NCBI RefSeq assembly: GCF_044704955.1
Contig: NW_027254113.1
Span: 434,001-498,000 of the forward strand
DNA: 64,000 nucleotides
Direction: 5' to 3'
From: Pristiophorus japonicus
Lineage: Eukaryota
Positions within the stretch are counted from its first letter, which is position 1, and each line of letters begins with the position of its first letter. Below the pieces are notes generated by a model. It saw nothing but the letters and a program-made list of their open reading frames with translations. It was not told where the DNA came from and searched no databases. Positions 26,398 through 63,484 of this stretch are shown here, piece after piece. A program made the translations under genes and the position numbers.

Positions 26398-26435
<38 letters not shown>

Positions 26436-27981
26436 AACACACACACACACACATAAACACACAAACGGACAGACACATAAACACACATAAACATATACCA
26501 AACACTTTTGTGTTCTCTTTTCAGTTGTTCATTTCACAAGGTGAGAACATATTTTCCGGTCGATATTAGGACACTGTGGCCGCCCATCCGGCGGTGCTCT
26601 GAGATCACGGTTCCAGGCTCTGTCCTACATAATCAGTGGGTCACGTCAAATACTGGATGAAAAACAATCCTTAACGTTAAAGAACTTGGAGAAATAGGCA
26701 CAGGACAACACAAGTGTGAATTAGTAACCTCAAGCCCACAGATTTTGCCAGTAGTTCAAAGTGCAGTGAATTGCTCACCTTCCGTCCTGTCCCTCAATCC
26801 CAGTCCATTACTGGAAGATTGTTACAAGATTCACTCATCCTTTCAACACAATTATTACCGTCATAATAACAGATCAATTAGAGATTGCACACACGTGCTG
26901 ATAGCTGTTAACAAATCTAAGCATATACTTCCAAACAAAAAAGTATTGCATCCTCACACCCACACATATATACATCTTTATTTATATTAATATCTGTCAA
27001 TCCCTCTTTATATCTCCTGCCTATGTAACAGACGCATGTGCAAGTGCTGAAATAACTGAGCAGGGTCGATAGTATAAGAAATACAGACAGCGTCCTGCGC
27101 ACTAATAGTTTAGACAAGATCTAATGTAATATGAAGAGAGACAGGCATTTATTATAATATATTTCAGCCATGGTCTATGGCAGGAATAACTGATGCAGTG
27201 CCTAGTGTAATATAAACAGAGACATGGTCGAGTTTAATATAAACTGAGACGGAGGTAGGGATGGGTGCACGGAGTGAGCGATTGATGGAGGGAGCGATGG
27301 AGGAATGGAGGAGTGGAGCAAGGGAGGTGTAGTGTATTGGACGGGTGGAGTGCGGAAAGAGGGAGGGAGAGGTGTGTCCAAGGAGGGAGCGATTGATGGA
27401 GGCAGGTATGGAGGGCGAGGGGGATAGAGAAATGGAGTGATGAAGGAATGGAGAGAAGTAGAGGCGGGTGGTCAGAGGGAATGATGAATTATCTCCCAAT
27501 TTACCCGATCAAAACTTTTCCTGATTTTGAATACCTCTATTAACTGGCCCATAACTTGCTCGGTTCTGAGGAGAACAGTCCAAGCTTCCAGCTGCTCTGA
27601 TGGTGCAGCTCACACAATATAAATCTCTTAAGTCTGTGAGTCGTTCTGCCTGGGGCACTTCGAGATGTTCCCTGTGGAATCACTGACACTTTTATATGAA
27701 CCCAGTGAAAATCACAGTGTGGTAATGATATCTCAGGCAAGATGAGAGAACTCGCTCCTGATGATAAATGGAGCGGTGTAAGACTGGGCTCAGACCCTGG
27801 ACTTCAGACATGATGAGCTGAATGGCAGCATTTTAAAATACAAGCTGTGATATGTTCAAGATTCGGCTCAGTGGGATCACTCTCGCCTCTGATTCAGAAA
27901 GTCACAGATACTAAACCCCGCTCGAGAGAGCTGAGCCGATAATGGAAACCGAAACGCCTGGTCCCAGTACTGTGGCAGTGC

Positions 27982-30842: not shown

Positions 30843-30996
30843 TAAATGTTAAAGCTATTAAACGACCTGCAATTGCATTTTGAATGAAGTAAAATGCTGA
30901 AAAATATTGGCTGAAGCTAATCATTTGTCTTTGTGGAGTGCACTTGCAGACATTATGAATGTGTGCAAGTGTTTTGTACACACACACACATATACA

Positions 30997-31034
<38 letters not shown>

Positions 31035-32582
31035 AACACACACACACACACACATAAACACACAAACGGACAGACACACAAACACACATAAACATATACC
31101 AAACACTTTTGTGTTCTCTTTTCAGTTGTTCATTTCACAAGGTGAGAACATATTTTCCGGTCGATATTAGGACACTGTGGCCGCCCATCCGGCGGTGCTC
31201 TGAGATCACGGTTCCAGGCTCTGTCCTACATAATCAGTGGGTCACGTCAAATACTGGATGAAAAACAACCCTTAACGTTAAAGAACTTGGAGAAATAGGC
31301 ACAGGACAACACAAGTGTGAATTAGTAACCTCAAACCCACAGATTTTGCCAGTAGTTCAAAGTGCAGTGAATTGCTCACCTTCCGTCCTGTCCCTCAATC
31401 CCAGTCCATTACTGGAAGATTGTTACAAGATTCACTCATCCTTTCAACACAATTATTACCGTCATAATAAAAGATCAATTAGAGATTGCACACACGTGCT
31501 GATAGCTGTTAACAAATCTAAGCATATACTTCCAAACAAAAAAGTATTGCATCCTCACACCCACACATATATACATCTTTATTTATATTAATATCTGTCA
31601 ATCCCTCTTTATATCTCCTGCCTATGTAACAGACGCATGTGCAAGTGCTGAAATAACTGAGCAGGGTCGATAGTATAAGAAATACAGACAGCGTCCAGCG
31701 CACTAATAGTTTAGACAAGATCAAATGTAATATGAAGAGAGACAGGCATTTATTATAATATATTTCAGCCATGGTCTATGGCAGGAATAACTGATGCAGT
31801 GCCTAGTGTAATATAAACAGAGACATGATCGAGTTTAATATAAACTGAGACGGAGGTAGGGATGGGTGCACGGAGTGAGCGATTGATGGAGGGAGCGATG
31901 GAGGAATGGAGGAGTGGAGCAAGGGAGGTGTAGTGTATTGGATGGGTGGAGTGCGGACGGAGGGAGGGAGAGGTGTGTCCAAGGAGGGAGCGATTGATGG
32001 AGGCAGGTATGGAGGGCGAGGGGGATAGAGAAATGGAGTGATGAAGGAATGGAGAGAAGGAGAGGCGGGTGGTCAGAGGGAATGATGAATTATCTCCCAA
32101 TTTACCCGATCAAAACTTTTCCTGATTTTGAATACCTCTATTAAATGGCCCATAACTTGCTCGGCTCTGAGGAGAACAGTCCCAGCTTCCAGCTGCTCTG
32201 ATGGTGCAGCTCACACAATATAAATCTCTTAAGTCTGTGAGGCGTTCTGCCTGGGGCACTTCGAGATGTTCCCTGTGGAATCACTGACACTTTTATATGA
32301 ACCCAGTGAAAATCACAGTGTGGTAATGATATTTCAGGCAAGGTGAGAGAACTCGCTCTTGATGATAAATGGAGCGGTGTAAGACTGGGCTCAGACCCTG
32401 GACTTCAGACATGATGAGCTGAATGGCAGCATTTTAAAATACAAGCTGTGATATGTTCAAGATTCAGCTCAGTGGGATCACTCTCGCCTCTGATTCAGAA
32501 GGTCACAGATACTAAACCCCGCTCGAGAGAGCTGAGCCGATAATGGAAACCGACACGCCTGGTGCCAGTACTCTGGCAGTGC

Positions 32583-35460
32583 AGGATGAATAAGGTGGAT
32601 GAATTAACTGTGCAAATAGATGTTAACGGATATGATATGATTGTGATTACGGAGACGTGGCTCCAGGATGATCAGGGCTGGGAACTCAACATCCATGGGT
32701 ATTCAACATTCAGGAAGGAAAGAATAAAAGGAAAAGGAGCTGGGGTAGCATTGCTGGTTAAAGAGGAGATTAATGCAATAGTTAGGAAGGACATCAGCTT
32801 GGATGATGTGGAATATATATGGGTAGAGCTGCAGAACATCAAAGGGCAAAAAACGTTAGTGCGAGTTGTGTACAGACCTCCAAACAGTAGCAGTGATGTT
32901 GGGGAACGCATCAAACAGGAAATTAGGGGTGCATGCAATAAAGGTGCAGCATTTATCATGGGTGACTTTAATATGCATATAGATTGGGCTAACCAAACTG
33001 GAAGCAATACGGTGGAGAAGGATTTCCTGGAGTGCATAATGGATGGTTTTCGAGAGCAATATGTCGAGGAACCAACTAGGGGGGGAGGCCATCTTAGACT
33101 GGGTCTTATGCAATGAGAGAGGATTAATTAGCAATCTCGTTGTGCGAAGCCCCTTGGGGAAGAGTGACCATAATATGATGGAACTCTACGTTAGGATGGA
33201 GAATGAAACAATTAATTCAGAGACCATGATCCAGGACTTAAAGAAGGGTAACTTTGAAGGTATGAGGGTGAATTGGCTAGGATGGATTTGCGAATAATAC
33301 TTAAGGGGTAGACTGTGGATGGGCAATGGCAGACATTTAGAGACCGCATGGATGAACTACGACAATTGTACATCCCTGTCTGGTGTAAAAATAAAAAAGG
33401 GAAGGTTGATGAACCGTGGCTATCAGGGAAATCAGGGATAGTATTAAAGCCAAGGAAGTGGCATACAAATTGGCCAGAAATAGCAGTGAACCTGGGGACT
33501 GGGAGAAATTTTGAACTCAGCAGAGGAGGACAAAGGATTTGATTAGGGCAGGGAAAATAGAGTACGAAAGGAAGCTTGCAGTGAACATTATGACGGACTA
33601 CAAAAGTTTCTATAGATATGTAAAGAGAAAAAGATTAGTAAAGACAAACGTAGGTCCCCTGCAGTCAGAATCAGGGGAGGTCATAACGGGGAACAAAGAA
33701 ATGGCAGACCAATTGAATATGTACTTTGGTTCGGTATTCACTAAGGAAGACACAAACAACCTTCCGGATATAAAAGGGGTCAGAGGGTCCAGTAAGAAGG
33801 AGGAAACGAGGGAAATCCTTATTAGTCGGGAAATTGTGTTGGGGAAATTGATGGGATTGGAGGCCGATAAATCCCAGGGCCTGATGGACTGCATCCCAGA
33901 GGACCTACGACGGTGGCCTTGGAAATAGCGGATGCATTGACAGTCATTTACCAACATTCCATAGAGTCTGGATCAGTTCCTATCGAGTGGAGTGTAGCCA
34001 ATGTAACCCCACTTTTTAAAAAAGGAGGGAGAGAGAAAACAGGGAATTATAGATCGGTCAGCCTGACCTCAGTAGTGGGTAAAATGATGGAATAAATTAT
34101 TAAGGATGTCATAGCAGCGCATGTGGAAATAGGTGATATGATAGGTCCAAGTTGGCATGGATTTATGAAAGGGAAATCATGCTTGACAAATCTTCTCGAA
34201 TTTTTTGAGGATGTTTCCAGTAGAGTGGACGAGGGAGAACCAGTTGATGTGGTATATTTCGACTTTCAGAAGGCTTTCGACAAGGTCCCACACAAGAGAT
34301 TAATGTGCAAAGTTAAAGCACATGGTATTGGGGGTAGTGTGCTGACATGGATTCAGAACTGGTTGTCAGACAGGAAGCAAAGAGTAGGAGTAAATGGGTA
34401 CTTTTCGGAATGGCAGGCAGTGACTAGTGGGGTACCGAAAGGTTCTGTGCTGGGGTCCCAGCTGTTTACATTGTACATTAATGATTTGGACGAGGGGATT
34501 AAATGAAGTATCTCCAAATTTGCGGATGTCACTAAGTTGGGTGGCAGTGTGAGTTGCGAGGAGGATGCCATGAGACTGCAGAGGGACTTGGATAGGTTAG
34601 GTGAGTGGGCAAATACATGGCAGATGAAGTATAATATGGATAAATGTGAGGTTATCCACTTTGGTGGTAAAAACAGAGAGACAGACTATTATCTGAATGT
34701 TGACAGATTAGGAAAAGGGGAGGTGTAACGAGACCTGGGTGTCATGGTACATCAGTCATTGAAGGTTGGCATGCAGGTACAGCAGGCGGTTAAGAAAGCA
34801 AATGGCATGTTGGCCTTCATAGCGAGGGGATTTGAGTACTGGGGCAGTTGCTACATTTGTACAGGGCCTTGGTGAGGCCACACCTCGAGTATTGTGTACA
34901 GTTTTGGTCTCCTAACTTGAGGAAGGACATTCTTGCTATTGAGGGAGTGGAGCGAATGTTCACCAGACTGATTCCTGGGATGGTGGGACTGACCTATCAA
35001 GAAAGAGTGGATCAACTGGGCTTGTATTCACTGGAGTTCAGATGAATGAGGGGGGGATCTCAGGGAAACTTTTAAAATTCTGATGGGTTTCGACAGGTTA
35101 GATGCAGGAAGAATGTTCCCAATGTTGGAAAAGTCCAGAACTAGAGGTCACAGTCTAAGGATAAGGGGTAAGCCATTTAGGACCGAGATGAGGAGAAACT
35201 TCTTCACCCAGAGAGTGGTCAACCTGTGGAATTCTCTACCACAGAAAGTTGTTGAGGCCAATTCAGTAAATATATTCAAAAAGGAGTTAGATGTAGTCCT
35301 TACTATTAGGGGTATCAAGGGGTATGGCGAGAAAGCAGGAATGGGGTACTGTAGTTGCATGTTCAGCCATGAACTCATTGAATGGTGTTGCAGTCTCGAA
35401 GGGCCGAATGGCCTACTCCTGCACCTATTTTCTATGCTTTTATCTTTCTATCTTTCTATG
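32583..35460 (+). mobile_element. CR1-type LINE ORF2, disabled; copy 3
   Basis: Same motifs and lesions; followed by the remainder of the interrupted SINE (about 35460-35790). Confidence 0.95.
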
Positions 35461-38400
35461 CTGCACGATTAGAGGTGCTGTCTTTTGGGGCAGACATTAA
35501 ACTGAGGCCCCGTTTTACCACTCAGGTGGATTTAAAGGATTCATGGCACTATCTTAAAGAGCAGAGGAGTTCTCCAGAGTTTCCAAGGGAAACATGTATC
35601 CATCAACCAACATCTGAAAAATTGATTATCTGATCATTATTTCATTGCTGTTTATGGGATCTTGCTGTGCACAAATTGGCTGCCACGTTTCCTAAATTAC
35701 AACCGTGACCTCATTTCCGAAATAATTCATTGGCTTTTAAGGACTTTGGGACAACTTGAGGTCATGAAAGGTGCTATACAAATGCAAGGTGTTTCGAAAT
35801 GTCAACATTGGAAAATACAATTTGTGATATGTGAAAAACTCAGATATTACTCTGATTGTCTGACACTCCTCTGCTCACTGGTTTAACGTATTAAGTTTCA
35901 ATGGATTAAATATTCCACTAAATGGAGATCCAGTGGAATAGCCGCCTGTTCAGAGATGTTACACTGAGTATGGCAGCAGAACTTTCAGAACTGAATTATT
36001 CATTTTAAAATTTATTCCGTTAGATATAAATCACACCTGTTCTAATTGAACAAAAACTGAAGCCAAAGTCACTGTTCGAGATATGTATATATCTGTGTAC
36101 CAACTGTCAATATTCTTAAAATAAGCCCTTGTTGTGAGTTGAAAAGAATCAATAAGTGAGTCTATTTATCTTATTTTGCTGCCATGAACATTTCATGGGA
36201 ACCAGTAAGACGTTTATGTAAATAAGGACGGAAATAGCAGTCTCAGATTAGAGTATTGAGCGACAGAAAGACAATAAATGATTCCCAACCAACACAGCAC
36301 AGAAATAAAGATAGAGAAAAATGCAAATCTCTCAACAGATTCCAGCAACAATTGTTTTTTGGTACATTTCTCTAAATTATAGGAGAATAAGGTAAAGATG
36401 ATCCCCACGGACAGAATGGGGAAGATTCTAATCACCGTACATAGTGGCATCACAAATGTGACAGTGGAGATTTCCCGTATCCTCTCTCTCTCCTATTTCC
36501 ACTTTCCGTCTTGTCTCTCAAGAATGGATAATTGGCTTTCCCGCACAACTTGATGTCAACATCTAACAAACCTTTTTCTTGAACCCTAATGATATGCCTC
36601 GAACCAAATTGATCAGAAGGCGCAGAGGGAGCTTTAATCCAAAATGTGATATGTGCATTTAATGATCTGGCAGTTTTTGATGGGACTATGTAGAGGGATC
36701 TTTACACTGTATCTAACCCGTGCTCTACCAACTCTGGGCGTGTTTAATGGGACTGTGTAGAGACAGCTTTACTCTGTACCTAACCCGTGCTGTACCTGCC
36801 CTGGGACTTATTGATGGAATGCTGTAGAGGGAGCATTACTCTGTATCTGACACATGCTGTACCTGCCCTGTGATTGACATAGATTAGTGCAGTAATATCT
36901 TAGACAGGGTCTAGTCTAATATAAACAGAGGCATGGTCTAGTTTATTAATATGAAAGAATGGAGCTAGTGTAATGTAAAGAGTGTCATTGTCTAATTTAC
37001 TGCAAGCAGAGACAGGGTCTTCAGTTAGGAACAATGGCATGGCATACTCCAGTAATATCTGAAACAAGGCCTAGTATAATATTAGTGTTTCTAGTGCAGT
37101 AATAACGGAGGTATTGGCTCGTGCAGTAATTACTGATACTGGGACATAGTTTATTGGTTCCTGGCATGTGGGTGTGTGTGTCGCTGGCAAGGCCAACATT
37201 GATTTTCTTCCCTAATTTGCCTTGAAAAGCATGTGGTGAGTTGCCACCTTGAACCGCTGCAGCCCGTGTGGCGAAGGTACACCCACAGTGTACGGGGGGC
37301 TGTTCCACGAATTTTACCCAGCGATTATGAAGGATCGGCAATAACTTCCAAGTTAAGATAGTGTGTGATTTGGAGGGTTATGTGGAGGTGATGGTGCTCC
37401 CATGAGCCCGTTGCCCTTGTCCATCCAGGTGGAAGAGGTCGTAGGTTTGGAAAGTGCTGTCGAATAAGTCTTGACGAGTTGTTGCAATGCATCTTGTAGA
37501 TAATACTCACTGCAGACAAAGTGCGCCGGTGGTGGAGGTAGTGAATATTTAATGTGGTGGATGGGGTAATACAAACAGCAACAGGGTCTAGTATAGTAAT
37601 AACTGAGACAGGTTCTTGTATATTATAGAATCATAGAATGGTTACAGCACAGAAGAGGGCCATTTGGTGCATATAGCCCGTGCCGCTCTCTGCAAGAGTA
37701 TTTCAGCTAGTCCACTCCCCCGCCCTTTCCCATAGCCCTGTGAATTTTATTCATTGAGGTACTTATCTAATTCCCTTTGTCATGCAATGATTGACTCCGC
37801 CTCCACCGCCCTTTCAGGTAGTGCATTCCAGATCCGAACCACTAGCTGTGTAAAAACGTTTTCCTCATGTCGCCTTTGGTTCTTCTGCCAATCACCTTAA
37901 ATCTGTGTCCTCTGTATTCGACCCTTACGGCAATGGGAACAGTTTCTCTCCAGCTATTCTGTCTACACCCCTTATGATTCTGAACACCTCTCTCAAATCG
38001 GATCTCAACCTTCTCTGCTCCACGGAGAACAATCCCAGCTTCTCCAGTCTATCCACAAAACTGATGCGTCTAATCCCCGGAACAACACGTAAATCTTTTC
38101 TGCCCCCTCTCTAAGACCATCACATCCTTCCTAAAGTGCAGTGCCCAGAATTGGACACAATACTCCAGTTGAGGCCTAACCAGTGTTTTATACACGTTCA
38201 TCATAATTTCCTTGCTTTTGTATTCTAGGCCTCTATTTATGAAGCCCAGGATTCCGCATGCTTTATAAAACACTTTCTCAACCTGTCCTGCCATCTTCGA
38301 TAATTTGTGCAAACATACCCCCAGGTTTCTCTGTTCATCACGCCTTTTAGAAATGTACCCTTTCATTTATTTTCCCTCTCCGCGTTCTTCCTACAAAAAT

Positions 38401-39608: not shown

Positions 39609-39754
39609 CTTGGAGATTGTTACAAAAGTCACCACATCTTATCAACACAAATATTAACGAAACAATACCAAATCAAGCAGAAATTTCAGATAGCTCTTGC
39701 TAGATGTTAACAAAACAAACATATACTTCAAACCAAAAACGTATTGAATCCTCA

Positions 39755-41335
39755 CAGAGTCTAGTGTAATATAACATAGGCAGGGTCTAGTGCAATATAA
39801 AGAGAGACAAGGTATAGTATAATATAAGCAGGGACAGAGCCTAGTGTAATGTAAACAGCAGCAGGGTCTCGTGTAATATAAACAGGGACAGGGCCTTGTG
39901 TAGTTTAAACAGAGACAGTGTCTAGTGTAATATAAACAAAGACAGGGTCTAGTGTAATACGAAAATAGACAAGGTGTAGTGTAATATAAAGAAAGACAGG
40001 CCTAACATAACATAAACAGGGACAGGGTCTAGTGTAAAATAAACTGAGACAGGGTCTACTGTAAAATAAACTGAGACAGGGACTATTGTATTATAAACTG
40101 AGGCAGGGTCTAGTGTAATGTAAACAGAGACACGGTCTAGTGTAATATAAACAGCAACAGGGCCTAGTGTAATAAAAACAGAGACAGCGTCTAGTCTAAT
40201 ATAAACAGGGACATAATCTAGTGTAATATAAACAGAGACAGGGTCTAGTGTAATATAAACAGAGACAGGGTCTAGTGTAATATAAACAGGGATATAATCT
40301 AGTGTAATATAAACAGAGACACGGTCTAGTGTAATATAAACATGGACAGGGTCTAGTGTAATATAAACAGAGACACGGTCCAGGGTAAAATAAACAGGGA
40401 CATAATCTAGTGAAATATAAAGAGAGACAGGGTCTAGTGTAATATAAACAGAGACGTGGTCTAGTGTAATATAAACATGGACAGGGTCTAGTGTAATATA
40501 ATCAGAGACAGGGTCTAGTGTAATATAAAAAGAGACAGGGTCTACTGTAATATAAACAGAGACACGGTCTAGTGTAATATAAACATGGACAGGGTCTAGT
40601 GTAATATAAACAGAGACAGGGTCCAGGGTAAAATAAACAGGGACATAATCTAGTGAAATATAAACATGGACAGGGTCTAGTGTAATATAATCAGAGACAG
40701 GGTCTAGTGTGATATAAACAGAGACACGGTCTAGTGTAATATAAACATGGACAGGGTCTAGTGTAATATAATCAGAGACAGGGTCTAGTGTAATATAAAC
40801 AGAGACAGGGTCTAGTGTAATATAAACAGAGACACGGTCTAGTGTAGTATAAACATGGACAGGGTCTAGTGTAATATAAACAGAGACATGGTCCAGGGTA
40901 AAATAAACAGGGACATAATCTAGTGAAATATAAACAGAGACAGGGTCCAGGGTAATATAAACATGGACAGGGTCTAGTGTAATATAATCAGAGACAGGGT
41001 CTAGTGTAATATAAAAAGAGACAGGGCCTAGTTTAATATAAACAGAGACAGGGCCTCGTGTAATATAAACAGCGACAGAGTCTAGCGTAATATAAACAGA
41101 GACATGTCCTCGTGTAGTAGAAACAGAGACAGCGGCTAGTGTAATGTAAACAGAGACAGGGCCTAGTGCAATATAAACACAGACAGTGTCTAGTGTAATA
41201 TAAACAGAGAGAGGGTCGAGTTTATTATAAACAGAGATGGCCTAACGTAATAAATTCAGGGACAAGGTCTAGTATAATTTAAAGAGAGACAGGACCTTGT
41301 GTAATATAAACAAAGACACGGTATAGTGTAATAAA
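39755..41335. repeat. Long 27-bp minisatellite array
   Basis: Dozens of aaacagagacagggtctagtgtaatat units with recurring variants; further arrays at about 41635-41900, 42590-43175, 45420-46328. Confidence 0.97.
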
Positions 41336-41344
41336 AATAAGCAC

Positions 41345-41635
41345 ATATAAACATAAGAACTAGAAACAGGAGTAGGCCGCCTGTCCCTTCGAGCCTGCTA
41401 TGCCATTTGATAAGATCATTGCTGACCTGATCATTGACTCAGCCCCACTTCCCTGCCCGCTCCCCATACCATCTATTCCCTTATCGCTCAAAGATCGATC
41501 TATCTCCGCCTTCAATATATTCAATGACCTAGCCTCCACAGCTCTCCGTGGCAGAGAATTCCATAGATTTACAGCCCTCTGAGTGAAGAAATTTCTCCTC
41601 ATCTCAGGTTAAATGGGCAGCCCGTTATTTTGAGG
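41345..41635 (-). mobile_element. CR1 3'-tip fragment
   Basis: MRRNFFTQRAVNLWNSLP; same position relative to the satellite as the copies at 793 and 12985. Confidence 0.85.
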
Positions 41636-43517
41636 GTCTAGTATATTATATACAGAGAGAGGATCTGGTGTAGCATAAGCAGAGACAGGGTCTAGTGTAA
41701 TATAAACATAGACAGGGTATAGTGCAATATAAACAGAGACAGGGTCGAGTGTGATATAAACAGAGACAGGCTCTAGTGTAATATAAACTGAGACAGGATC
41801 TAGCATAATATAAACAGAGAGAGGGTCTAATGTAATATAAAAAGTGGCAGAGTCTAGTGTAATATAAACAGAGACATGGTGTAGTGGAGTAATAACTGAG
41901 AAACAATCTGCTGTGATTTCATAGTGTCACAGAAAATTACGGCATAAAGGAAGCTATTCGTTCCATCGCACATCTGCTGAATCTGAGTGAAAACAAATTC
42001 TGCTCTTCTCCGCTCTAGATCTTTTGCCAATGCTTTTAAATCTATGACCACTGCTTAGTGAGAGCCGACACACTATATCATAGAATCTTAGAAATTTACA
42101 ACATTGAAGGAGGCCATTTCAGTTCATTGTATCTGCTTCAGCCGACCAAGAGCTATCCTGCCTAATCCCACTTTCCAGCTCGTGTTCTGTCACCTGTAGG
42201 TTACGACATGTTAATTGAACATCCAAGTATCGTTTAAATATGGTGAGAATTCCAGCCTCTATCAATATTTCATGCATTGCGTTTCAGACCTCCACCACCC
42301 TCTCGGTGAAGACATGTCCCCTCATATCTCCTCTACATTATAAAAACAAGCTGGCATGTTGGAGAGATCTATTAGCTCGCTAATTAAACTACTCTGTTAC
42401 AAGGAGAACAGTTATAACTTTTGAACTCTCTAATTGAAGCCCCTCATCCCTGGTAACAACCCGTTAAACCTCTTCAGTCGCCTTTCTAGTGTCTGTACAT
42501 CGTTATGGAAATGTGGTGCCCAAAAATGTCCATAATATTCCATCTGAGATCTAAGGCCTAATATAAGCAGAGATGAGTTGCAATACATTAATAACTGAGC
42601 CAGCGCGTAGAGTGATTTAAATAGAGACTGGGTCAAGTGCAAGATAAACAGAGAGCGGCTCTAGTGTAATATAAGCAGAGACAGGGTCTAGTGTATTATA
42701 AACTGAGACAGGGTCTATTGTAATATAAACAGAGACAGGGTCTAGTGTAATATAAACGGAGACATTATCTAGGGTAATATAAACAGAGACAGGTTCTAGT
42801 GTAATATAAACAGAAACAGGGCCTGTTGTACTATAAACAGAGACAATGTCTAGTGTAAAATAAAGAGAGATAGGGTCTAGTGCAGAGAAGTGTCGCATGT
42901 AATGTAAACAGTGACTAGGTCTAGTGTAATATAAACAGAGACAGCGTCGATTGTAATATAAAGAGAGACAGGGTCTCGTGTAATATAAACAGAGACAGGG
43001 TCTAGTGTAATGTAAACAGGGACAGGGTCTCGTGTAATATAAACAGAGACAGGGTCTAGTGTAATGTAAGCAGGGACAGGGTCCAGTGTAATATAAACAG
43101 AGACAGGGTCTAGTATAATGTAAGCAGGGACAGGGTCTAGTGTAATCTCAGCAGAGAAATGGTCTAGTGCAGTGGTTACTGTACGTCCTACCAGTGGAAA
43201 AGATTTCTAACTATTTACTCGATTAAAACTTCTCATAATTTTGATCGCCTCTATTAAATCGCCCTTAACATTCTCTAATCTAAGGAGCATCGTCGTAGTT
43301 TCCAGCTGCTCTACTGATGCACCTGATGAACATCCAGATGCGGAGTCGCTAGATTTGATATGGAAATCCCACTTTACAACAGTGTCAGAATATCATCCCA
43401 GGCAAGATAAGAGCATTATCCCCTGGAATTAAACCGACATGTAAGACTCGTCTCAGGCACTGAACTTTGGACACTCTAAACTAAATGACAACATCTAAAA
43501 AATAAAGCAGTGGTGTG

Positions 43518-43975: not shown

Positions 43976-46477
43976 AGTTATTTCTAAATGTCAACATTTA
44001 AAATATACGTTGCAATGGGTCACTCCTCTGCTCGCTGTTGTAACTTGTTTAGTTTAAATGGCAGGAATCATACTCAAAATGGACATCCAGTGAATCACTG
44101 ATCTGTTCAGAGACGTTCCACTGACTTAAGTATCGCAATTTTCAGAAATGAATTTTTCATTTTAATATTTTCCCTTTGATATAAATCACATCTCTTCTGA
44201 TTAAACAAAAAAAACCGATGTCACTGCTGGAGATATTTCCATTTATTTGTACCAGCTAACAATATTCATAAAATAAATCCGTGCTGTGAGTTAAAACTAA
44301 TCAGTAAAACTTTGTGGATCTGCTTTTGCTTCCATGAACACTTCCTGGAAACCAGTGAGGTGTTTATGTAAATAAACACAGAAATAGAAGTCCCAGATTA
44401 GAATATTGAACGACAGAAACACAGTAAATGTTTCTTCATCAATACAGAATAGAAATAAACAGAGAGAGAAATGCTAATGTCTCAACGGATTCCAGCAACA
44501 ATTGATGTTTTGTAGATTTCTTTCAGTTATTGGTGAGCAAATCAACGATGTTATCCGCGGTCAGAATGGGGAAATATTCTAGTCACCGTATATAGTGACA
44601 GCTCAATGTATTAGTGGCAATTCCCTGTATCCACTCCCTCTCTGCCTCTCTCTAATATCCCCACCTTCTGCCTTGCCTCTAAAGAATGCCTCATTATCTT
44701 TACCTCGCAATAAGAAGTCAATGTCTAACAAAAATGTTCCCTAAGGTCTATTTCCAGGCCTCAAACCAAATTGGTGGTTGTGCGGAGAGGCAGCTTTATA
44801 ATAAAATATGTCGTGTGAACTCAAAGATCTTGGGTGTTTGATGGGACTCTGTAGAGGGAACTTTACTCTGCTTCTAACCCCGTGCTGTACCTGCCCTGGG
44901 AGTGTGATATGTGACGGTGTAGAGGGAGCTTTAGTCTGCATAGACCATTGCTGTACCTGCCCTGGGAGAGTTTGATGGGACGGTGTAGAGCAAGCTTTAC
45001 TCTCTATCTAAACCGTGCTGTACCTGCCCTGGGAGTGTTTGATGTGACGGTGTAGAGGGAGCTTTACTGTTTCTCGAATAGTGCTGTACCTGAGCTGGGA
45101 GTGTTTAATGGGACATCATCGAGGGAGCTTTTCCCTGCATAGACCCGCGCTGTACCTGCCCTGGGAATGTTTGATGGCACAGTGTGACATCTCTTTCCCA
45201 GAAAAATGTTATTATCAGTGCAACTTCCTGTATATTGCATTTCCTTTTTACCTTTTTGACATAATTACGTCATAAACACGTAAACAATGGGTGAAGTCAT
45301 TTTTCACAACAATGCAGCATCATCAACTTGACTTGGTCGCAACAGCAACATCAGTGCGACCTCTGACCTTCAGCCACACAAATTGCTCGATTTGACCGAT
45401 ATAGACACATCTATACCCCAGGGTCCAGTGCTGTAATAACCGAGACATGTCCAATTGTAACATAGATAGAGAGGATATAGTTTAATATATACATTTACAG
45501 GGTCTAGTGTAAAATAAACAGACACAGCCTCTAGTGTAATATAAACAGAGACAGTGTGTAGTGCCATATAAACAGAGACAGGGTCTAGTGTAGTAAAAAC
45601 AGAGACACTGTCTAGTGTAATATGGAAAATACAGGATCTAGTGTAGTAAAAACAGAGACAGTGTCTAGTGTAATATGGAAAATACAGGGTCTAGTGTAAC
45701 ATAAACAGAGACTGTGTCGAGTGTAATATAAAAAATACAGGGTCTACTGTAACATAAATAGAGACAGGATCTAGTGTAATATAAATAGAGACAGGGTCTA
45801 GTGTAATATAAATAGAGACAGGAGCAATCTATTATAAAGAGACAGGGGATAGTATAATATAAACAGGGTCCAACATAATATAACAAAGGAAATCGTGCTC
45901 TAATAATAACTAATACATGATCTATTGTATTAGAAACATTGACATTTCCTAGTGCAATATAAACGGAGACAGTGTCTAGTGTAATATAAAGAGAGACAGG
46001 GACTAGGGAAATATTGACAGAAACAGGGTGTACGGTAATATAAACAGAGACAGCGTCTAGTTCAATAGTAACTGAGACAGGTTCTAATGTATTATAACAG
46101 AGGGTCGAGTACTGTGATAACTGATACAGAGCTGAGCATAATATAAACAGAGACAGGTTCTAGTGCAGTATAACTGAGACAGAATTTACAGTAATAAAAT
46201 AGATCCCGATGGAGTGCAGTAATAACTGAGACAGGGCCTTGTGCAATATGAATAGAGAGAAGGTCCAGTGCAGTTATAATTATACAGAGTCTAGAGTAAT
46301 TTAAACATATCGAATATCTAGAGTAATTTGAAAGCAACATTCCAGCCATGCAAATCTTCATGTCTGTCTGACTGTCTATCTGTCTGTCTGTCTGTTGTTC
46401 GGTCGATCCGTCCGTCCATCTGTTACTTCCGTCCCTCGATTCGGACTTCTGTCCATCTATCTGTACTTCTATCTAAT

Positions 46478-47025
46478 ATTATGCTAGACCCTGCCTCTGT
46501 TTATATTACACTAGACCCTGTACCTGTTTATATTACACCAGGTCCTGTCGCTGTTTATATTACACTAGACCCTGTCTCTGTTTATATTGGACTAGACCCT
46601 GTCTCTGTTTATATTGTACTAGACCCTGTCTCTGTTTATATCACCCTGGACCCTGTCTCTATTTATATTACACTAGACCCTGTCTCTGTTTATATTGCAC
46701 TAGACCCTGTCTCTGTTTATATCACCCTGGACCCTGTCTCTATTTATATTACACTAGACCCTGTCTCTGTTTATATCACACTGGACCCTTTCTCTGTTTA
46801 TATTAAACCAGACCCTATCTCTGTTTATATTACACAAGACCCTGCCTCTGTTTATATTACACTGGACACTGTCTCTTTTTATATTCTTCCGGACACTATC
46901 CCTGTTTATATTACATTAGGCCCTGTCTCTGTTTATATTACAGTAGATCCTGTCTCAGTTTATATTACGCCAGACACTGTCTCTGTGTATATTATCCTCG
47001 ACACTGTCTCTCTTTTTATTTCACC
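46478..47025. repeat. 27-bp minisatellite in the opposite orientation
   Basis: (tattacactagaccctgtctctgttta)n, the reverse complement of all upstream arrays. Confidence 0.95.
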
Positions 47026-47595
47026 AGATCATCTTTCCTTTTCAAAAATATATTGATTTCCCTATTTGAAAGTTATAATTGAATCTGCTGCCATCACCCT
47101 TTCAGGCACTACATTCCAGGCTATTAAAACTTTCTGCATAAAAAATCTCCTTATCTCCATCGTCTGGATTTATTTTATCAATCACCTTAATCTTTGTCCT
47201 CTGGTTACCGATAGACCTGCCGATGGAAACCCTACCTTCCTATCAACTCTATGAAACCCCTTCACAATTTTGAAAACATCTGTTAATTCTCCCCTAAGCA
47301 TTCCCTGCTATAATAAGAATAATCCCATCCTCTTTCGTCTCCACATAACTAACTCCCTCATGCCTTGCAGCAATCTCCTCTGCATCCTCGGCAAGAGCCC
47401 AAAATTCTTCCTAAAATGTGGATTGAAATAAATTTATTGGCCCTTCAGATTATTTCTAAGGATACATGCTTCCTTCAAATTTGATAGACTGAGAAGCATT
47501 CATTATATTGTTTTACTTGTTTTGACAATGCAGACGGTGACTGAAATACTCAGCAACATTCGTCTCCACATGACTCATGTATCAATATGATCACT

Positions 47596-49273: not shown

Positions 49274-49449
49274 NNNNNNNNNNNNNNNNNNNNNNNNNNN
49301 NNNNNNNNNNNNNNNNNNNNNNNNNNNNNNNNNNNNNNNNNNNNNNNNNNNNNNNNNNNNNNNNNNNNNNNNNNNNNNNNNNNNNNNNNNNNNNNNNNNN
49401 NNNNNNNNNNNNNNNNNNNNNNNNNNNNNNNNNNNNNNNNNNNNNNNNN
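49274..49449. other. Assembly gap (N run)
   Basis: 176 N. Confidence 0.99.
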
Positions 49450-51160: not shown

Positions 51161-51206
51161 ATGAGGTCGGTGATTTCTCTCAGTCTGTTGCTGGCTTTCT
51201 TTTCCC
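51161..51206 (+). CDS. IGHV: IgM heavy chain leader exon ([15 protein letters not shown], phase 1)
   Basis: ATG at 51161, hydrophobic signal peptide, donor C|gtgagt at 51207; completed by GT GTC CAG TCG at the start of the V exon. Confidence 0.93.
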
Positions 51207-51333: not shown

Positions 51334-51638
51334 GTGTCCAGTCGGATGTGGTGTTGACTCAGCCCGAGGCAGAGATCAGGTTTCCCGGAAGCCCCCTGAG
51401 ACTGACCTGTAAAACCAGCGGCTTCGATCTTGGTGGCAGCTACATGTACTGGATCCGCCAGATTCCCGGACAGGGGCTGGAGTGGCTGGTTCAGTATTAC
51501 AGTCCATCGAACAAGTATTACGCCGCAGGGATGGCGAGCCGATTTACTGCGTCCAAAGACATTTCAAACAACATCTTCGCGCTGGACATGAAGAATCTGA
51601 AGAGCGAAGACACCGCCATCTATTACTGTGCAAGGTAC
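51334..51638 (+). CDS. IGHV: Ig heavy-chain variable exon (shark VH), open frame
   Basis: Acceptor tttttacag|; [10 protein letters not shown]...LTCKTSGF...[13 protein letters not shown]...RFTASKD...[11 protein letters not shown] with canonical Cys, Trp and YYC. Confidence 0.97.
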
Positions 51639-51677
51639 CACAGCGAGAGGAACCAGGGCTAGACCTGTACAAGAACA
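51639..51677 (+). promoter_or_regulatory. V recombination signal sequence, 23-bp spacer
   Basis: Heptamer CACAGCG (51639-51645), 23-nt spacer, nonamer ACAAGAACA (51669-51677). Confidence 0.93.
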
Positions 51678-52084
51678 GATCGAGGGGGAATTCAACAACT
51701 TACATCATAACCTGATGGTCATTAATTGTGTCAAATGCAATGTTACCGGCAATGTACAGAACAAGACCATAAACCGCTTCTTACAAAACTAACACACTGA
51801 GAATTTAATGGTGAAAATCTAACACACTAACCCATGTACAGAGGGGAGGTTTTGATTATGCTCCTGTTTAATGTTAACAGTGTCAGCAATTGCAGAGCTG
51901 GAGGTGATGCTCGATTCACTGTGCCTGGTACATGCAGGGAGCTGGTTAGAACTGTGTTCACTTTCAATTGTGCTATGTAAACTGTTGGCTAAATTCTAAA
52001 CTTGATCAGAAGCGAATGAGTATTTGAAGTGAATGTCTATTTGACGTGAATGTTGAGAGTCAGTACTGAGCAGAGAGTGAGTGC

Positions 52085-52112
52085 AGTATGTGTGCGGGTT
52101 CCTGTCACTGTG
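52085..52112 (-). promoter_or_regulatory. Recombination signal sequence 5' of the D(D)J segment, 12-bp spacer
   Basis: Perfect heptamer CACTGTG (52106-52112). At 12-nt spacing the nonamer AGTATGTGT matches GGTTTTTGT at 6/9; at 23-nt spacing the match is only 4/9. Confidence 0.78.
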
Positions 52113-52180
52113 GGACTGCGGGAGTGGGTACATTGCCAAGGACTACTGGGGACAAGGGACCATGGTGACGGTGACTGCAG
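52113..52180 (+). CDS. IGHJ: Fused D(D)-J segment, DCGSGYIAKDYWGQGTMVTVTA
   Basis: WGQGT J motif, donor G|gtaagg at 52181; 28 nt of D-like sequence in frame with J and no internal RSS. Confidence 0.9.
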
Positions 52181-52221
52181 GTAAGGAACATTCACTCATT
52201 CAGTAACTCTTGTATTTGTGT

Positions 52222-53486
52222 CTTTATTTTATATTTCTGTTTATTTTAATAATTATTTCGTTCACTGAAACTTAGGTTCAGTGGATTTTGTTTTGAGATT
52301 TTTTGCAATTTTCAATGTGATTCTGCTGCAAAGTGATTATAGAATTCAACTGTTTCTCCACAGAAAATGTTGTTGATGTGATTTTCTGTTTATTTGCTGA
52401 CGAGACATGTGCCTGGGTTACTCTAAAAACATTATGGTTTTTACACTGTTTGATGTTTCTGCAATGTTTAATTTTGGTGACCACTAATTGCTGCAGTTTT
52501 TCTGATCGAATGCAAACATTGTGTTTAAATGTGTTTAAAAGAACATTGTAGACACAAAACAGAAAGCTTAGCGACCAGTAAATAATCTTAAGGAATTTTA
52601 AGTTTTTTAATGAAAATTGGATTGTCATCTACTGACCGAATGTTCCCGAACTCTCAGATTCAATACGTGAGCTGTTACTGTAATTAAGTACTTAAAAATT
52701 AACATATTTCACGCTGGGACACACTTAAATTAATATTATTAACATTATTATAATGTAGCAATATCATCACGTTTTATTAAATATGCTATAATATCAACAT
52801 TAATGTATTTAACATGATCTGTCTAATCACAATTCTGCTCTCATTATTTTATATTTCTGTTGAATTCAATCTTTAGTTATTTCAGTGTTAGGCGGGTTCA
52901 GTGATTTTGTAATGAGATTTTTTGCAATGATACATTTGATTCTGCTGAAAGGGTTGATGAAATGAAGGATCTGCTCCATGAAAGGTTCTGTCGAGGGATT
53001 CCGCCCCTCAGTGATGTGATTTAGTGTTGATCTGCTGAGGAGAGATGTGCCTGTGTTACTCAGAATACCTAGAATTTGTGAATCTAGGCGTTTCTACAAT
53101 GTTCAATATGGGTGTCAGCGGGCAGCAGCAGGTTTCTGCTCGAATGCAAACACGATATGTGTTTGAAACTGTTTGAAAACAGTTTATAGACAGAGAACAG
53201 GACGGGTTTCGAAATCAGAAATCATTGAAAGGTATTTTAATATAACAATTATACAAGTGATAATTATATATTCAACTATTAATTTATGTTTACGATGCTG
53301 ATATTTTATTGTGCGAAATGTAACTAATTGCCATCTGAATAATTAACGTGTTCAGGATGTAGTTGAATTAAATTAATATTAACCAACCGATTATAATGCG
53401 ATAATATCTCCCAGTGTTATTAAAATATGCTATAAGTCCAATGTTAATTTACTTAATATTATTCGCCTTCCAAAATCCTGCTCTAC
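52222..53486. repeat. Ancient tandem duplication of about 630 bp at the start of the J-C intron
   Basis: Paired anchors ttattttatatttctgtt, ggttcagtg...gagattttttgcaat, cgaatgcaaaca and atatgctataa...ctgctct in both halves. Confidence 0.8.
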
Positions 53487-55724
53487 ACTGGGCTCCATTA
53501 AAGGAAGCAGAAACTTTTAGAGGCTGGATACAGTTATTAATTATGCCTGCAATTATTTCATTAATAACATACTGATTCCACCGCTGTGTTCAGTTTGAGT
53601 CGGGAGTTCAATTATTTGCTACCTCCTGTTTACACAGATGAATGACTGAGTGCAATTAATTATAACTTAAAGCCGTGTTGCAAATTGCATTTTGTCAATT
53701 TAATATATCTGCTGGGGTATGACATTCTCACTGTGCAGCCTAAAATTGTTATTGAATCAATATTGTGTGTTGTTTGATAGAATTATTACTAAATTAATCT
53801 TGAACACTATGCAAGACCAAAAGCTGAGAGACAGGCGTCGCTGGCAGTCAAAGAATTATTCATGTAATTATATTTAAATTCAAGGCAGGTTCCGACTGTG
53901 TATGGATGGAGACAGGCAAATAATCCATTGAAATTCAAGCAGATTAATTTACTTACAAAAGGTCCATCTTCTTTTGAATTTAAAACAAAATCCTATCTCC
54001 CAAAACGCTGCTGTATGCGGAATAGAACGGTAGACAAAGCACAGATAATATCTGAGAGTTATGTTTAATTCTTATGAATGTTAAATTGATGAACAAAGTC
54101 TCACCTCATTCAGTTTCAGTGTCGCATATGGTCTGAATGATTTGTTATCCTCCAGTTTTACACTCACCATTCTGGAAACTATTTTCAAGAAGTAGCAGAA
54201 TATATTTAATCATTAATTTGCGGGCATTATGTGAATAACGGGAGTGAACTATAAAAGATTGTCTGTGTTATTAAACAGCGGAGGCTCTGCTATTGACTTT
54301 AAGCTGCACGGGTGGGTTTTAATTAATAAAACCATTTTTGGGGTTTAAGATTGAGGAGAATATTTCAGCTCGAGATTCCAGTATTAGTAAACAAGCGGTT
54401 TACAACCATCGGAGTTGTGACCTCGGCTGGACAGAGAACTATTTAAAATAGTCCTCCCCTAAATCCATCATGTGAAATGTTCTCTGCGAATAGACTCAGT
54501 TTTTGCTATATCAGAAACATGCAGAGTTTAAAAAGATGTCGGTCGAGAGCGGGACAGTGGTAGAACTGCGTGATTATTGTCAATTATTCAAATTTGATTC
54601 GATTTAAGTAAAAATAAGGTATTTTTCTGAGAATGTATGTATTAATATGCTGCTTAATATTTTAATATTCATGAATTGTTATTGTAAGTTAAGTTAATCT
54701 TAATATATCACAAGTTACCAGGCAGAAAAAGGTTTTAATATTATTATTAATTAATTGCATTAGTAAGGCATGCATTCAAGAACGTTAATTTAATTTCAAA
54801 AGTTCCAGGTACGTGTGCTTCTGAGCAGGAAGAGCCAGATAGGCACTCAGATTATTTTCAATAACCAGCTAACATGAACATTAACTTAGACAGTAACATC
54901 AGTGCTAATTCATTAAACATAAACGATCCATTACAATTGTGTTGCATACTGGTCAGTATTACAATTATTGCAAAATCTCAAGGGTTGCAGATAAAGTTTA
55001 ATTAATTCATAAGTTAATTTACAAAACAATGCATGTATAACCCGGCTGTGCTGAGTTTGATAAGGTGTCGCTGCAGATTTTAGTGAATTAACTTCTTGTT
55101 TTGCCTCGATGATTTTACAGGTTATATTTACTGATGAAAATATATAAAATCAGTGGGTGATCAGGTTTCAATGTAGATGTCCCCTGGATTGTGACATTCT
55201 GAATATGTCACCAAGTCCCGTGTGACGGGCAGCAAATTGCCGTGGAATGTGAATTATTTCCAGATACTTACTTTCAGGGAAGTTAATTTTTACACGGTTT
55301 ACAAGATAGTTGACAGAGATGGAAAAATGGCTGGATGTTGAAGTTTCTCTCAAATTAATATCAGTTTAATTTCAAAGAATCTGCAGAGTTGCGGTGGTTG
55401 GAAATTGGCAAGAAATAAATTAGAAATCAAACAACTTCATTGAAATTAATAGATTGAACTGGTCTCTCTGCCTGGAGCACCGTTTGTGTCTGTTCTGTTT
55501 ATGTGCGCCTGCTCACTGTGTGAGAATCAGGAATCCTCCTGACGGGTTGTAAAACTTCTGGATTGTGATCCTGTATTGCGGGGAGTGTCATTTAACTCAG
55601 TTATTTAAGAAACTGGAATAGGTGAGAAACGTGAAAGATTGACTTTGAGGTTGTGGAGTCTCCGCAGAAATGAGATCGTTAATCCAGATTATGATAGCCA
55701 GAAGAAGCAGTTCCGAAACACCAT

Positions 55725-56520
55725 GGGGAGACAGTAGAAGGAGCTTTAATCAGTTTCTAACCCGGTAGTACCTGCCCTGGGAGTGTTTGATGGGACAGGG
55801 CAGAAGGAGCTTTACTCTGTATCTAGCCCATGCTGTACGTGCCCTGGGAGTGTTTGATGGGACAGTGTAGAGGGAGTGTTACTCTGTATTTAGCCCATGC
55901 TCTACGTGCCCTAGGAGTGTTGATGGGACAGTGTAGATGGAGCTTTACTCTGTATCTTGACCCATGTTGTACCTGCCCTGAGAATGTTTAATGGGACACT
56001 GTAGAGGGAGCTTTACACTGTACCTGTCTTGGGAGTGTTTGATGGGACAGTGAAGAGGGAGCTTTACTCTGCAACTAACCCGTGCTTTACCTTAAATGGC
56101 AGTGCTTGATGGGACATTGCAGAGATAGTATTTAAACTTTTATTTACAAGGACGTGGAGCTTAATTGGGTCCTTCAATATAGATTGATCTTCTATTTAAT
56201 CAGAGCTCTAGGTGAGCTGGTGCGCTTTAATGGATCAGTGTATCGGAAGCTTTTATTTGTACTTGTGATAATTGTGCTTAATCTAATCGGTCAATTTGAT
56301 AACGCATTTTAAGGGAAGACATTTCGTAGCACATCTCTGCAGTACTTCAGCTGGGAATGTTTGACGGGATAGCACAGATAACGTATTACTCTGTGTGCAA
56401 CCCTTGCTATACCTGTCCTGACCCACACGGCAGCATAGCGGGAGCTTTGCTCTCTTATCCGTGCTATATCTGACCTGAGAGTGCTTGGTCAGGCAGTGTT
56501 CAAGGCACCGTTATCTGCGT
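55725..56520. repeat. About 65-bp minisatellite in the J-C intron
   Basis: Same unit as 8275-8592, decaying toward the 3' end. Confidence 0.88.
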
Positions 56521-57229
56521 CTAACAGATAGCAGATAAACTGCTCGTGCCAGATATATACAATGAATCGTCCCATTGCCCAGATTAAACAACGCACATTC
56601 ATTGATGTTTATATTCTTTCTGAAAAAAATGCCCAATTTTTAATGAGTTATTAATGTTTGAACATTTTGAGCATCAGATTACTATTGAACAAGATTGGCC
56701 TGATCCTCAGCTCACTTTCAGAACAAACCGTTTCAGGAAGTGAATAACGCTCCAGAAAGCAGCGCCTGTTCTGATCTGTTGGGAGGCTGTAAGATATTTT
56801 CACAATTTAAATGGAGAATATCGGGACTGCCGCTTCAAATGACCGTCATGAGGACCTCATGTTTAGAAACATTATGTTGTTCAATTCTTCCTGAGAAGGT
56901 TAAAGGCAGGGACAAACTATGACGAGATGCAGCTATTGGCCTGGGTCACAAGACAAGGCACACAGTCACTGAGCTGCAATTCTGTGAAACATTTAAAGAG
57001 ATAGAGTCAACCTGCAATACGTCATCATTCACAATGAACTTTAAGCCTTTATAACAGCATGCGATTGACTAATTTGCGTCAGATTTATAAGATCCTTTTC
57101 TGAAATATCCTCTTTCATTCTAATGAACAATAAAAGTAGATCTGGTAGAGGTGTCCAAAATATGAAGCGTTTCCTTCCGTTAAATCTAGAAGAACTATTC
57201 CCATGACTCGTATAGAATGATAGCATCTC

Positions 57230-58125
57230 ACAACACTGAAAAGACCATTCAGACATCGTGCCTGTGCCGGCTCTGAAAGAGCTGTCCAATTTAGTCCAAC
57301 TCCCCAGGGTTTTCATTGTAAACGTGCAAATGAATCCTCCTGACGTACAGGATGAACTGCCTGGAGCATTCCTGAAATTACCAACCCTCTGTGTGAAAAA
57401 ATTACCCCAATTTCCCCTTTCGATCTTCTGCCAATTATTTTAAATCTGTGACCTTTGGTTACGCACCTTCTTTCCAGCGAAAACTGTTTCTCCCTACTTG
57501 CTCTATCAAAACCTGTCATAATGTTGAATATCTCTCTTAGGTCTCCTCTTAACCTCTGCTCTAAGGAGAACATCCCAGCTTCTCCAATCTCTCCACATAA
57601 CTGAAGATCCCATCCCTGGCATCATCCTGGTAAAAGCCTCCCCTCTACACTCCCCAAGGGCTTGACATCCTTCCTACACTGTTGTTCCAGAATTGTGCAC
57701 AATACTCCAGCTGAGGTCTAACACGTGATCTGTAAGTTTAGCATAACCGCCTTGTTTTTGTAGTCAATGTCCCATTTACAATGTCAAGTATCCCATACGC
57801 TTTCATAATAGTCTAACCAGTTTGCCCTGCCCCCTTCAAAGATTTGTGAATATGTACATCTAGATATCTCTGTTCGTGCATCCCCTCAAAATAATACTAT
57901 TTAGATTATACTGCCTCTCCATCTTCCATCCAATGTGCATCGCTTCTCAATGATTCGCATTAAATTGCAATTGCCATGTTCCCGCCCATTTCACTGGACC
58001 ATCTGTCTCCTCATGGAGTCTGCTGCTATCATGTTCACTATTGGCTACGTTGCCAGGTTTTGCATTATCTTTTAAATTCGAAATTGCATTCCCTATACCC
58101 AAGTCCATGTCATTGTTACATAACA
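57230..58125 (-). mobile_element. Old CR1 fragment in the J-C intron
   Basis: FSLEQRLRGDLREIFNIMTGFDR...KGHRFKI; KWAGTWQLQFN. Confidence 0.8.
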
Positions 58126-58888
58126 AGAACAACAATGGGAATTGAAATGGGCCATTTAAGGAGAAACTTCCAATTAACCGGAATTTGGAATGGTATTTTA
58201 TTCGGATTATTAATTGAGTGGCAGGGAGGAGGAAACTCAAGAGACATGCATTCAATAGGATGGGATAGAGTCCAGATCACAGTGCGCTGAAGGACATCGC
58301 TCTCCCTCAAATACTGAGAAAGAAAGAGAGAGATTCAACTCAATCGCGATTCATCTACAGACTGAATCTTAGAAACTAGACTATGGAAATGCTTCCTGTT
58401 GAATTATGTGGCAGGCAAATTTAGAGGGTTTTTTGCTGACGCGCGAGGCAGGAATTCCGCTGTTACTTTGAAGTGCAGTCACTGTTGTTTTGTAGGGATA
58501 CGCCGCAGGCAATGTGCACAGAGTAAATTTCCCCAAACTGCAATAAAGGACCAAAAATGGTGCTGATTGAGAAATAAATGATGGCCGAAAAAGCAGGAAC
58601 ACGTCTCTGTTCTTCGATTGTATGATCCAATGAAGGATTCTTTATTGACGAGTTATGTAAAAGTTCTTGTTGTGTAATGTGATAGAGCTCGGGGATAGAG
58701 AGGTGTGTTCCTGACAGGGGCATCGACAGGTGCTTATGATGGAACTGACAGAAGCTCAAATGCCCGTGTAGTCTTTGATGGGGAAATGATGGAATTAGTT
58801 TATTCTGCAGTCAAATTTCGAGTTGTTTATTTCTTTTATAAGCACGGATTACAGAGTCTAACTTGTTCAATGGGCCATTCCTTCCCAG

Positions 58889-59188
58889 TAACACCGTCTC
58901 CCCCCACCCTCTACGCCCTGCTCTCCTCCTGTGAACAACCCAGCACCGATGGCTCCATCACGTACGGCTGTTTGGCAATGGACTATTCCCCCGACATCAC
59001 CAGCCTTTCCTGGAAGAAAGATAAAGAGCCGATCACCACTGGATTGAAGACCTACCCGCCACTGCTCAACAAGAAGGGAACCTACACCCAGAGCAGCCAG
59101 TTAACCATCACCGAGTCAGAGGTGGGGAGCAGCACAATCAACTGCGAGGTTCGACGTGGTGTGTCGGTCTGGGCCATCACAATGCCAG
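58889..59188 (+). CDS. IGHM: IgM constant exon CH1
   Basis: ttcccag| to |gttagt; [16 protein letters not shown]...[10 protein letters not shown]...SWKK...[12 protein letters not shown]...CEVR; retains the early Cys normally used for light-chain linkage. Confidence 0.95.
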
Positions 59189-59606: not shown

Positions 59607-59924
59607 ATCCTGAACGGGACATCGTTCCTCCAACTGTTCTCCTCACACTGAGTTCCACTGAACAAATCACCAGCAGCAGATATGCAAGCGCCGTGTGTTC
59701 AATCATCGATTTCAGGCCAAAGTCACTGACTGTGAATTGGCTGAAGAGTGGACAACTCATGGATTCGGGCTTCCTCACCTCTCCCGTCTTTGAGGTGAAC
59801 GGGAACTTCTCGACAGCCAGTCGGCTGACAGTCCCCGCCGAGGAATGGTTAACCGGCTCGGTCTACACCTGCCAGGTCACTCATCAAGGGGTCACGCAAA
59901 ACCGTAACTTCAGCAGATCTCAGG
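59607..59924 (+). CDS. IGHM: IgM constant exon CH2
   Basis: ttgaag| to |gtaaga; PPTVLLT...[18 protein letters not shown]...[10 protein letters not shown]...YTCQVTH. Confidence 0.95.
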
Positions 59925-61884: not shown

Positions 61885-62193
61885 TGGATGTCCCATGCAG
61901 CGATTCAAAAATCACTCTTCGCTCACCATCACTGGAACAGATATTACTGGAGGCGACGGTGACCTTAACCTGCGTCGTGTCAGACGCTCCTTATGGGCTC
62001 ACTGTGACCTGGACCCGAGAAAAGGAGGCTTTGAAATCAGAGATTGCCGTCCAACCGGGAGAGGATCCCAACAGCGTGATCAGCAACTTAAACATCTCGA
62101 CACAAGACTGGCTGAGTGGGGATAAGTTCTACTGCGTGGTGAGCCATCAGGATATGCCGACACCGATCAGAGAATCCATCCACAAGGAGAAGG
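61885..62193 (+). CDS. IGHM: IgM constant exon CH3
   Basis: ttttgcag| to |gtgagc; [19 protein letters not shown]...TWT...[20 protein letters not shown]. Confidence 0.95.
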
Positions 62194-63092: not shown

Positions 63093-63484
63093 CGAAAGAT
63101 CCACGGGAACCAGCCGTGTCTGTCCTCCTGCCCTCGGCAGAAGAAGTCTCCGCTCAGAGGTTGGTCAGCCTCACCTGCTTAGTGAGAGGTTTCTCCCCCC
63201 GAGAGATCTTCGTCAAATGGACCGTCAATGACAAGCCGGTGGATTCGGGCAACTACAAGAACACCGAGGTGATGGCGGAGAACGGCAGCAGCTCCTTCTT
63301 CATGTACAGCCTGCTATCCATTGCAGCCGAGGAGTGGGCCAGCGGCGCTTCTTACTCCTGTATGGTGGGACATGAAGCGATCCCCTTGAAGATCACCAAC
63401 AGAACCGTCAATAAATCCAGCGGTAAACCCAGTTTCGTCAACATTTCCCTTGTTCTGATGGACACCGTAAATTCTTGTCAATGA
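63093..63484 (+). CDS. IGHM: IgM constant exon CH4 plus secretory tailpiece
   Basis: gacag|; [17 protein letters not shown]...YSLLSI...YSCMVGHE...[23 protein letters not shown]. Internal donor G|GTAAA after 63422 for the TM form; tail has an NIS sequon and penultimate Cys. Confidence 0.96.

Follow-up and report, generated by a model that had tools for sequence, protein, structure and literature searches.

We propose that the stretch of Pristiophorus japonicus DNA analysed here (the window, 64 kb in length) carries an IgM minilocus in which a D1-type D, possibly with a stub of D2, is fused to J in inherited DNA, and we regard it as likely that this fusion was made by RAG. Segments that are separate in canonical shark clusters are contiguous in this one, a D1-like end and a J core lying within a single 68-nt exon, and where the canonical V-D1-D2-J order comes with six recombination signal sequences (RSSs) we find two RSSs and one intersegment. 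The V is not fused to D1, as it retains a normal V end with its own 23-RSS.

Anatomy of the IgM cluster

The window contains a single immunoglobulin cluster, of the shark IgM type and on the + strand, with the following parts:

51161-51206, + strand: leader exon, 15 residues and a split codon, donor GTGAGT at 51207
51334-51638, + strand: VH exon, open, with the canonical Cys/Trp/Cys and the 3' end TGT GCA AGG TAC
51639-51677, + strand: V 23-RSS, CACAGCG / 23-nt spacer / ACAAGAACA
51678-52084, + strand: the single V-to-DJ intersegment, 407 nt, without an RSS-flanked D in the RSS scan
52085-52112, + strand: 12-RSS in the D-5'/J orientation, AGTATGTGT / 12 nt / CACTGTG
52113-52180, + strand: DJ exon, 68 nt, open, donor G/GTAAGG at 52180/52181
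52181-58888, + strand: J-Cmu1 intron, 6.7 kb
58889-59188, + strand: Cmu1 exon, Pfam C1-set, splice phase checked
59607-59924, + strand: Cmu2 exon, Pfam C1-set
61885-62193, + strand: Cmu3 exon, Pfam C1-set
63093-63484, + strand: Cmu4 exon and secretory tail, Pfam C1-set (E 9e-23), stop at 63482-63484

For the reading-frame check the leader and V exon were joined computationally, and the homology searches were run exon by exon. The leader resembles that of Heterodontus HV01, the VH exon is recognised as a Pfam V-set domain (E 3e-14), and a protein search with the V open reading frame gave as its best match a heavy-chain V region of Heterodontus francisci at 72%, with none closer. J carries the WGxGT motif and a splice donor, and all four Cmu exons are open and splice consistently in phase 1.

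Each of the two recombination signals is the sole site at its threshold in the 64 kb on both strands, the threshold for the 12-RSS being a perfect heptamer, a nonamer matching at 6 or more of 9 letters and a 12-nt spacer. The heptamer of the 12-RSS is perfect and its nonamer, AGTATGTGT, is weak at 6/9. Measured from the V nonamer, the nonamer of the 12-RSS follows after 407 nt and its heptamer after 428 nt. A preliminary description of this DNA had claimed a V with a 23-RSS, a single 12-RSS some 410 nt downstream whose heptamer abuts an in-frame segment ending in a J core, and no further RSS-flanked D between V and J; the RSS scan, the letters and the coordinates bear this out on every point. 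The same description had set the cluster apart from the IgM1gj type on account of four intact C exons, and here too it agrees with what is found, Cmu2 being present at 59607-59924.

Several other signal-like sites were considered and rejected. The perfect heptamer at 51917-51923 lacks a nonamer and was not accepted as a second RSS. At 55482-55520, on the - strand within the J-Cmu1 intron, a perfect CACAGTG heptamer stands with a 23-nt spacer and the nonamer ACACAAACG, with no V-like coding sequence adjoining it, and this site probably arose by chance. Matches resembling a J core or FR3 at 6180, 15804, 22179 and 36297, on the minus strand, lie in repeats and have no immunoglobulin reading frames.

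Outside the Ig cluster the window consists of LINE-like repeats, satellites and two runs of N (10502-10703 and 49274-49449), which are assembly gaps or masked letters. Three tandem, nearly identical LINE-like copies of about 4.6 kb occupy 22500-36000 on the + strand and carry endonuclease and reverse-transcriptase open reading frames, and further reverse-transcriptase fragments are found on the - strand at 1000-3500 and 9000-9900. A satellite with a 27-nt unit is present at 429-789, 39754-41337, 41633-41886, 42618-43169, 45478-46102 and 46476-47028, and one with a 67-nt unit at 8322-8584, 18278-18563, 36676-36870, 44834-45185 and 55734-56022, the last of these arrays lying inside the J-Cmu1 intron.

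Composition of the DJ exon

Directly after the heptamer the exon reads GGACTGCGGGAGTGGGTACATTGCCAAG and then GACTACTGGGGACAAGGG, and its translation in the J frame, DCGSGYIAKDYWGQGTMVTVTA, is free of stops. We divide it into three parts:

52113-52129, + strand: D1-like part, GGACTGCGGGAGTGGGT, 17 nt, with an untrimmed 3' end AGTGGGT
52130-52140, + strand: middle letters, ACATTGCCAAG, 11 nt, of ambiguous origin
52141-52180, + strand: J-derived part, GACTACTGGGGACAAGGGACCATGGTGACGGTGACTGCAG (DYWGQGTMVTVTA), followed by the donor GTAAGG at 52181

The published germline segments of the nurse shark (PMC2435157 Figs S1/S11) are ATACTACAGTGGGT for D1, ACATACTGGG(A/G)TAG for D2 and ACTATTTTGATTACTGG for J. 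In a comparison that is both cross-species and post hoc, the AGTGGGT at 52123-52129 agrees with the 3' end of this D1 at 7 of 7 letters, which is also the D1 ending that the preliminary description had given. In a comparison of the same cross-species, post hoc kind the 11-mer AGTGGGTACAT is identical to a flush nurse-shark D1-D2 junction, and any such junction 11-mer occurs in 12 of 200000 random 28-mers. At the other end of the exon, the contribution of J is delimited by an ordinary J of the same species, which in DNA contigs from runs X1 and X3 (one sample) reads ...GGAATGTAA CACTGTG ACGGCAT GACTACTGG... and is 47 nt long. Its match to the DJ exon begins only at 52141, and the same boundary is seen in a second species, organism C.

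These comparisons also bear on whether the exon could be an ordinary, if unusually long, J with its own 12-RSS in a cluster that lost its Ds by plain deletion, with no recombination of D to J. With a single exception the shark J flanks compared begin with AC, as do the letters at 52130-52140, and the 5' ends of J vary widely among clusters, both of which would suit such an origin. However, the 68-nt exon exceeds the ordinary same-species J by 21 nt, its opening 17 nt close with letters identical to the 3' end of D1, and the letters before its heptamer, GGGTTCCTGT, are unlike those of the ordinary J, whose 255 nt of upstream sequence fit nowhere in this stretch. The signal and flank of the exon are thus not those of that J. 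We consider a long J improbable on these grounds, and return to the fusion of D to J as the reading that most reasonably fits the exon.

As judged from sequence comparison, we treat the contributions of D1 and J to the exon as established. The 11 letters between them could be a 5' remnant of D2 (ACAT), P or N letters, or the variable 5' end of J itself; their AC is palindromic to the preceding GT, as P letters would be. Germline-joined light-chain genes of sharks show little TdT activity (PMC2193156), which favours a templated origin for ACATTGCCAAG, of whatever source. The contribution of D2 turns on the four letters ACAT, and the fusion may have involved one D or two. The proposal that D1, D2 and J are fused, and that 52113-52140 can be split into D1, a D2 remnant and J, is upheld for the end of D1 and the start of J, the 11 nt in between being ambiguous.

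Paralogous contigs and probable inheritance of the fused layout

Contigs related to the locus come from DNA runs of the same species, of unstated tissue and possibly from the assembled individual. One of them (record 7) covers 51979-52269 at 89% identity with 5 gap letters and a depth of 19, and is colinear with the window through the spacer, the 12-RSS, the DJ and the J intron. Records 5, 6 and 13 are likewise colinear, but are 16-19 letters shorter somewhere within 51803-52191, and records 4 and 12 extend from V across the 23-RSS to within the spacer. The intersegment at 51678-52084 is covered by paralogous contigs at 86-89% identity. Of the exact 31-mers of the locus a fraction of 0.53 is present in the DNA runs, and at 50990, 51001, 51134 and 51171 the window differs from every same-species contig that covers these positions, the last of them giving leader codon 4 as Val in the window and as Ala in all of the covering contigs. 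Taken together, the 31-mer fraction and these site differences indicate that public contigs contain no more than part of the exact copy.

As record 7 has diverged from the window and yet has the same layout, it argues for a layout that is inherited and duplicated, and speaks against an origin in somatic rearrangement or in the assembly. The opposing explanation is that of an artefact, either a deletion in the assembly or the inclusion in it of a V-DDJ molecule rearranged somatically in a lymphocyte, and it draws on the frequent occurrence of V-DDJ as a somatic intermediate in the thymocytes of sharks (PMC2435157), on the unstated tissue of the DNA and on the partial presence of the exact copy in public contigs. 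Neither a somatic event nor a single assembly collapse can yield the colinear spacer, RSS and DJ of a contig at 89% identity, however, and records 5, 6 and 13 are colinear too apart from their shortfall of 16-19 letters; moreover the DNA of a somatic clone would be much too scarce to dominate an assembly consensus. An artefact is accordingly the least credible of the explanations considered here, and we judge it very improbable. From the layout shared with this diverged paralog we infer that D was fused to J in the germline, as the preliminary description had put forward.

Fully joined genes are found in the same material. Among the contigs of the same species, as among those of organism C, there are relatives in which V, D and J are completely joined (over 51629-52147), the letters in between reading, for example, ...TGGCTGGTACTCTCTTGCGGAT in the former and ...GCATACTGGGGTGGCGAA, with a D2-like core, in the latter. 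As they stand at ordinary contig depth we take these relatives to be germline-joined genes, and their occurrence in the same DNA runs indicates that joining in the germ line is common or active in the lineage. Furthermore, a contig of organism B (record 16, 1963 nt) matches the window at 51539-51695 and again at 52141-52167, and has a V end with its 23-RSS and a J core at most about 450 nt downstream, which suggests that the compact V..(D)J layout may also exist in this related species.

Proposed mode of rearrangement and place among germline-joined genes

We propose the following model for the origin and use of the cluster. In the germ line of an ancestor, recombination of the RAG type would have fused D to J, removing the inner recombination signals and the intersegments between them and keeping the 5' 12-RSS of D1, and duplication of the cluster would then have copied the fused layout. 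In lymphocytes, the 23-RSS of V and the 12-RSS of DJ, which lie in the same orientation, would satisfy the 12/23 rule, and a single deletional join would excise 51639-52112 and complete the variable exon. A flush join of V to DJ would miss the reading frame by one letter, and trimming or addition would be needed, as is usual. The predicted CDR3 is about 14 residues long, variable at its V-side junction and fixed in the remainder (...GSGYIAKDYW), and would hold one unpaired Cys provided that D1 is retained in full. The resulting heavy chain would have one diversified junction and a largely fixed C-terminal part of its CDR3. That one V-to-DJ step remains, as had been claimed beforehand, follows from the V keeping its 23-RSS, which leaves a single join compatible with the 12/23 rule.

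The model agrees with what is known of rearrangement in the nurse shark, where the IgH segments lie about 400 bp apart with J at 6.3-6.8 kb from Cmu1, where products of two rearrangements measure about 0.8 kb against 1.6 kb in the germline, and where V-DDJ is a normal RAG product of lymphocytes that is prominent in Group 5 loci (PMC2435157). With its one intersegment of about 400 nt and its J-C intron of 6.7 kb, the cluster described here has the geometry of such a two-rearrangement product. For shark light chains, RAG-mediated joining in germ cells has been argued previously (PMC2193156).

We infer that the 12-RSS is competent in spite of its weak nonamer and that the gene is used, and against this must be set the case of an inherited fusion in a cluster that has become a relic and goes unused, perhaps poorly transcribed or recombined and contributing nothing to the repertoire. 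Expression of germline-joined heavy-chain genes went undetected in the horned shark, in work cited in PMC2193156; the nonamer of the 12-RSS matches at the minimum of the threshold; none of the listed runs that hold the locus is recorded as RNA; and there is no canonical octamer near the promoter, none with one mismatch or fewer occurring in the approximately 700 nt upstream of the leader, which is not proof of a dead promoter. On the other hand all exons, all splice sites and both heptamers are intact in spite of a divergence of about 11-14% among the paralogs, and in the J frame the DJ is open throughout. We regard the relic as a serious possibility, though one with less than an even chance.

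The existence of germline-joined IgM forms in sharks, which the preliminary description had mentioned, is well documented, the forms listed being VD-J, VD-DJ, VDD-J and VDJ (PMC5192425, PMC4279169, PMC2193156, PMC7916673). The partly joined IgH clusters of the horned shark and of skates are likewise inherited fusions within an otherwise normal minilocus and are attributed to RAG in germ cells, and VD-DJ clusters already include an inherited fusion of D to J (PMC5192425, PMC4279169, PMC2193156). In VD-J, VDD-J and VD-DJ, however, V is fused to D, whereas in this cluster V stands unjoined, still bearing its 23-RSS, and the fusion is confined to the D(D)J side. A structure like the one proposed here is that of the somatic V-DDJ of the nurse shark (Malecek et al. 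2008, PMC2435157), with a free V, a retained V-D1 spacer and D1 5' signal and a fused D1-D2-J, but this is made in single lymphocytes and contains N regions, whereas the present form is found in a genome assembly and in a diverged paralogous contig. Nurse-shark IgM1gj is likewise an IgM heavy-chain gene that is joined in the germline and has its CDR3 predetermined, but it is fully VDJ-joined and without Cmu2, whereas this cluster has a free V and four Cmu exons. Similarly, the V-J clusters of shark light chains are completed by one V(23)-to-(12) join, and the DJ intermediate of mammals (mouse pro-B cells) keeps the 5' 12-RSS of D; in contrast to both, this is a heavy-chain cluster in which DJ is the inherited state and not a stage of development.

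In the open-access literature on sharks the terms V-DDJ and V-D-DJ appear only in PMC2435157, as somatic intermediates, and no genome-era description of an inherited V-D(D)J was found in that literature, although an earlier one may exist outside it.

Germline joining in sharks is the classic evidence that RAG can act in germ cells and reshape antigen-receptor loci, and its principle is not new. In one review the VD and VDD forms are read as an indication that joining in germ cells differs from the programme of lymphocytes. The forms listed in reviews all start from V, and V-D(D)J adds a modest variant to this long-known pre-joining; with an inherited V-D(D)J, J-side products known from lymphocytes would also be fixed in the germ line. 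It is possible, if unlikely in our estimation, that V-DJ clusters constitute an old, duplicated, selected and expressed subclass of IgM, perhaps an early one like IgM1gj, with a semi-invariant CDR3 made in one step like that of a light chain, and that such clusters are shared with organism B. If expressed, the cluster would provide a semi-innate subset of heavy chains in which there is a single junction and most of the CDR3 is fixed, and V-DJ clusters would offer, again if expressed, a simple natural substrate in which to study the order of rearrangement and exclusion in miniloci.
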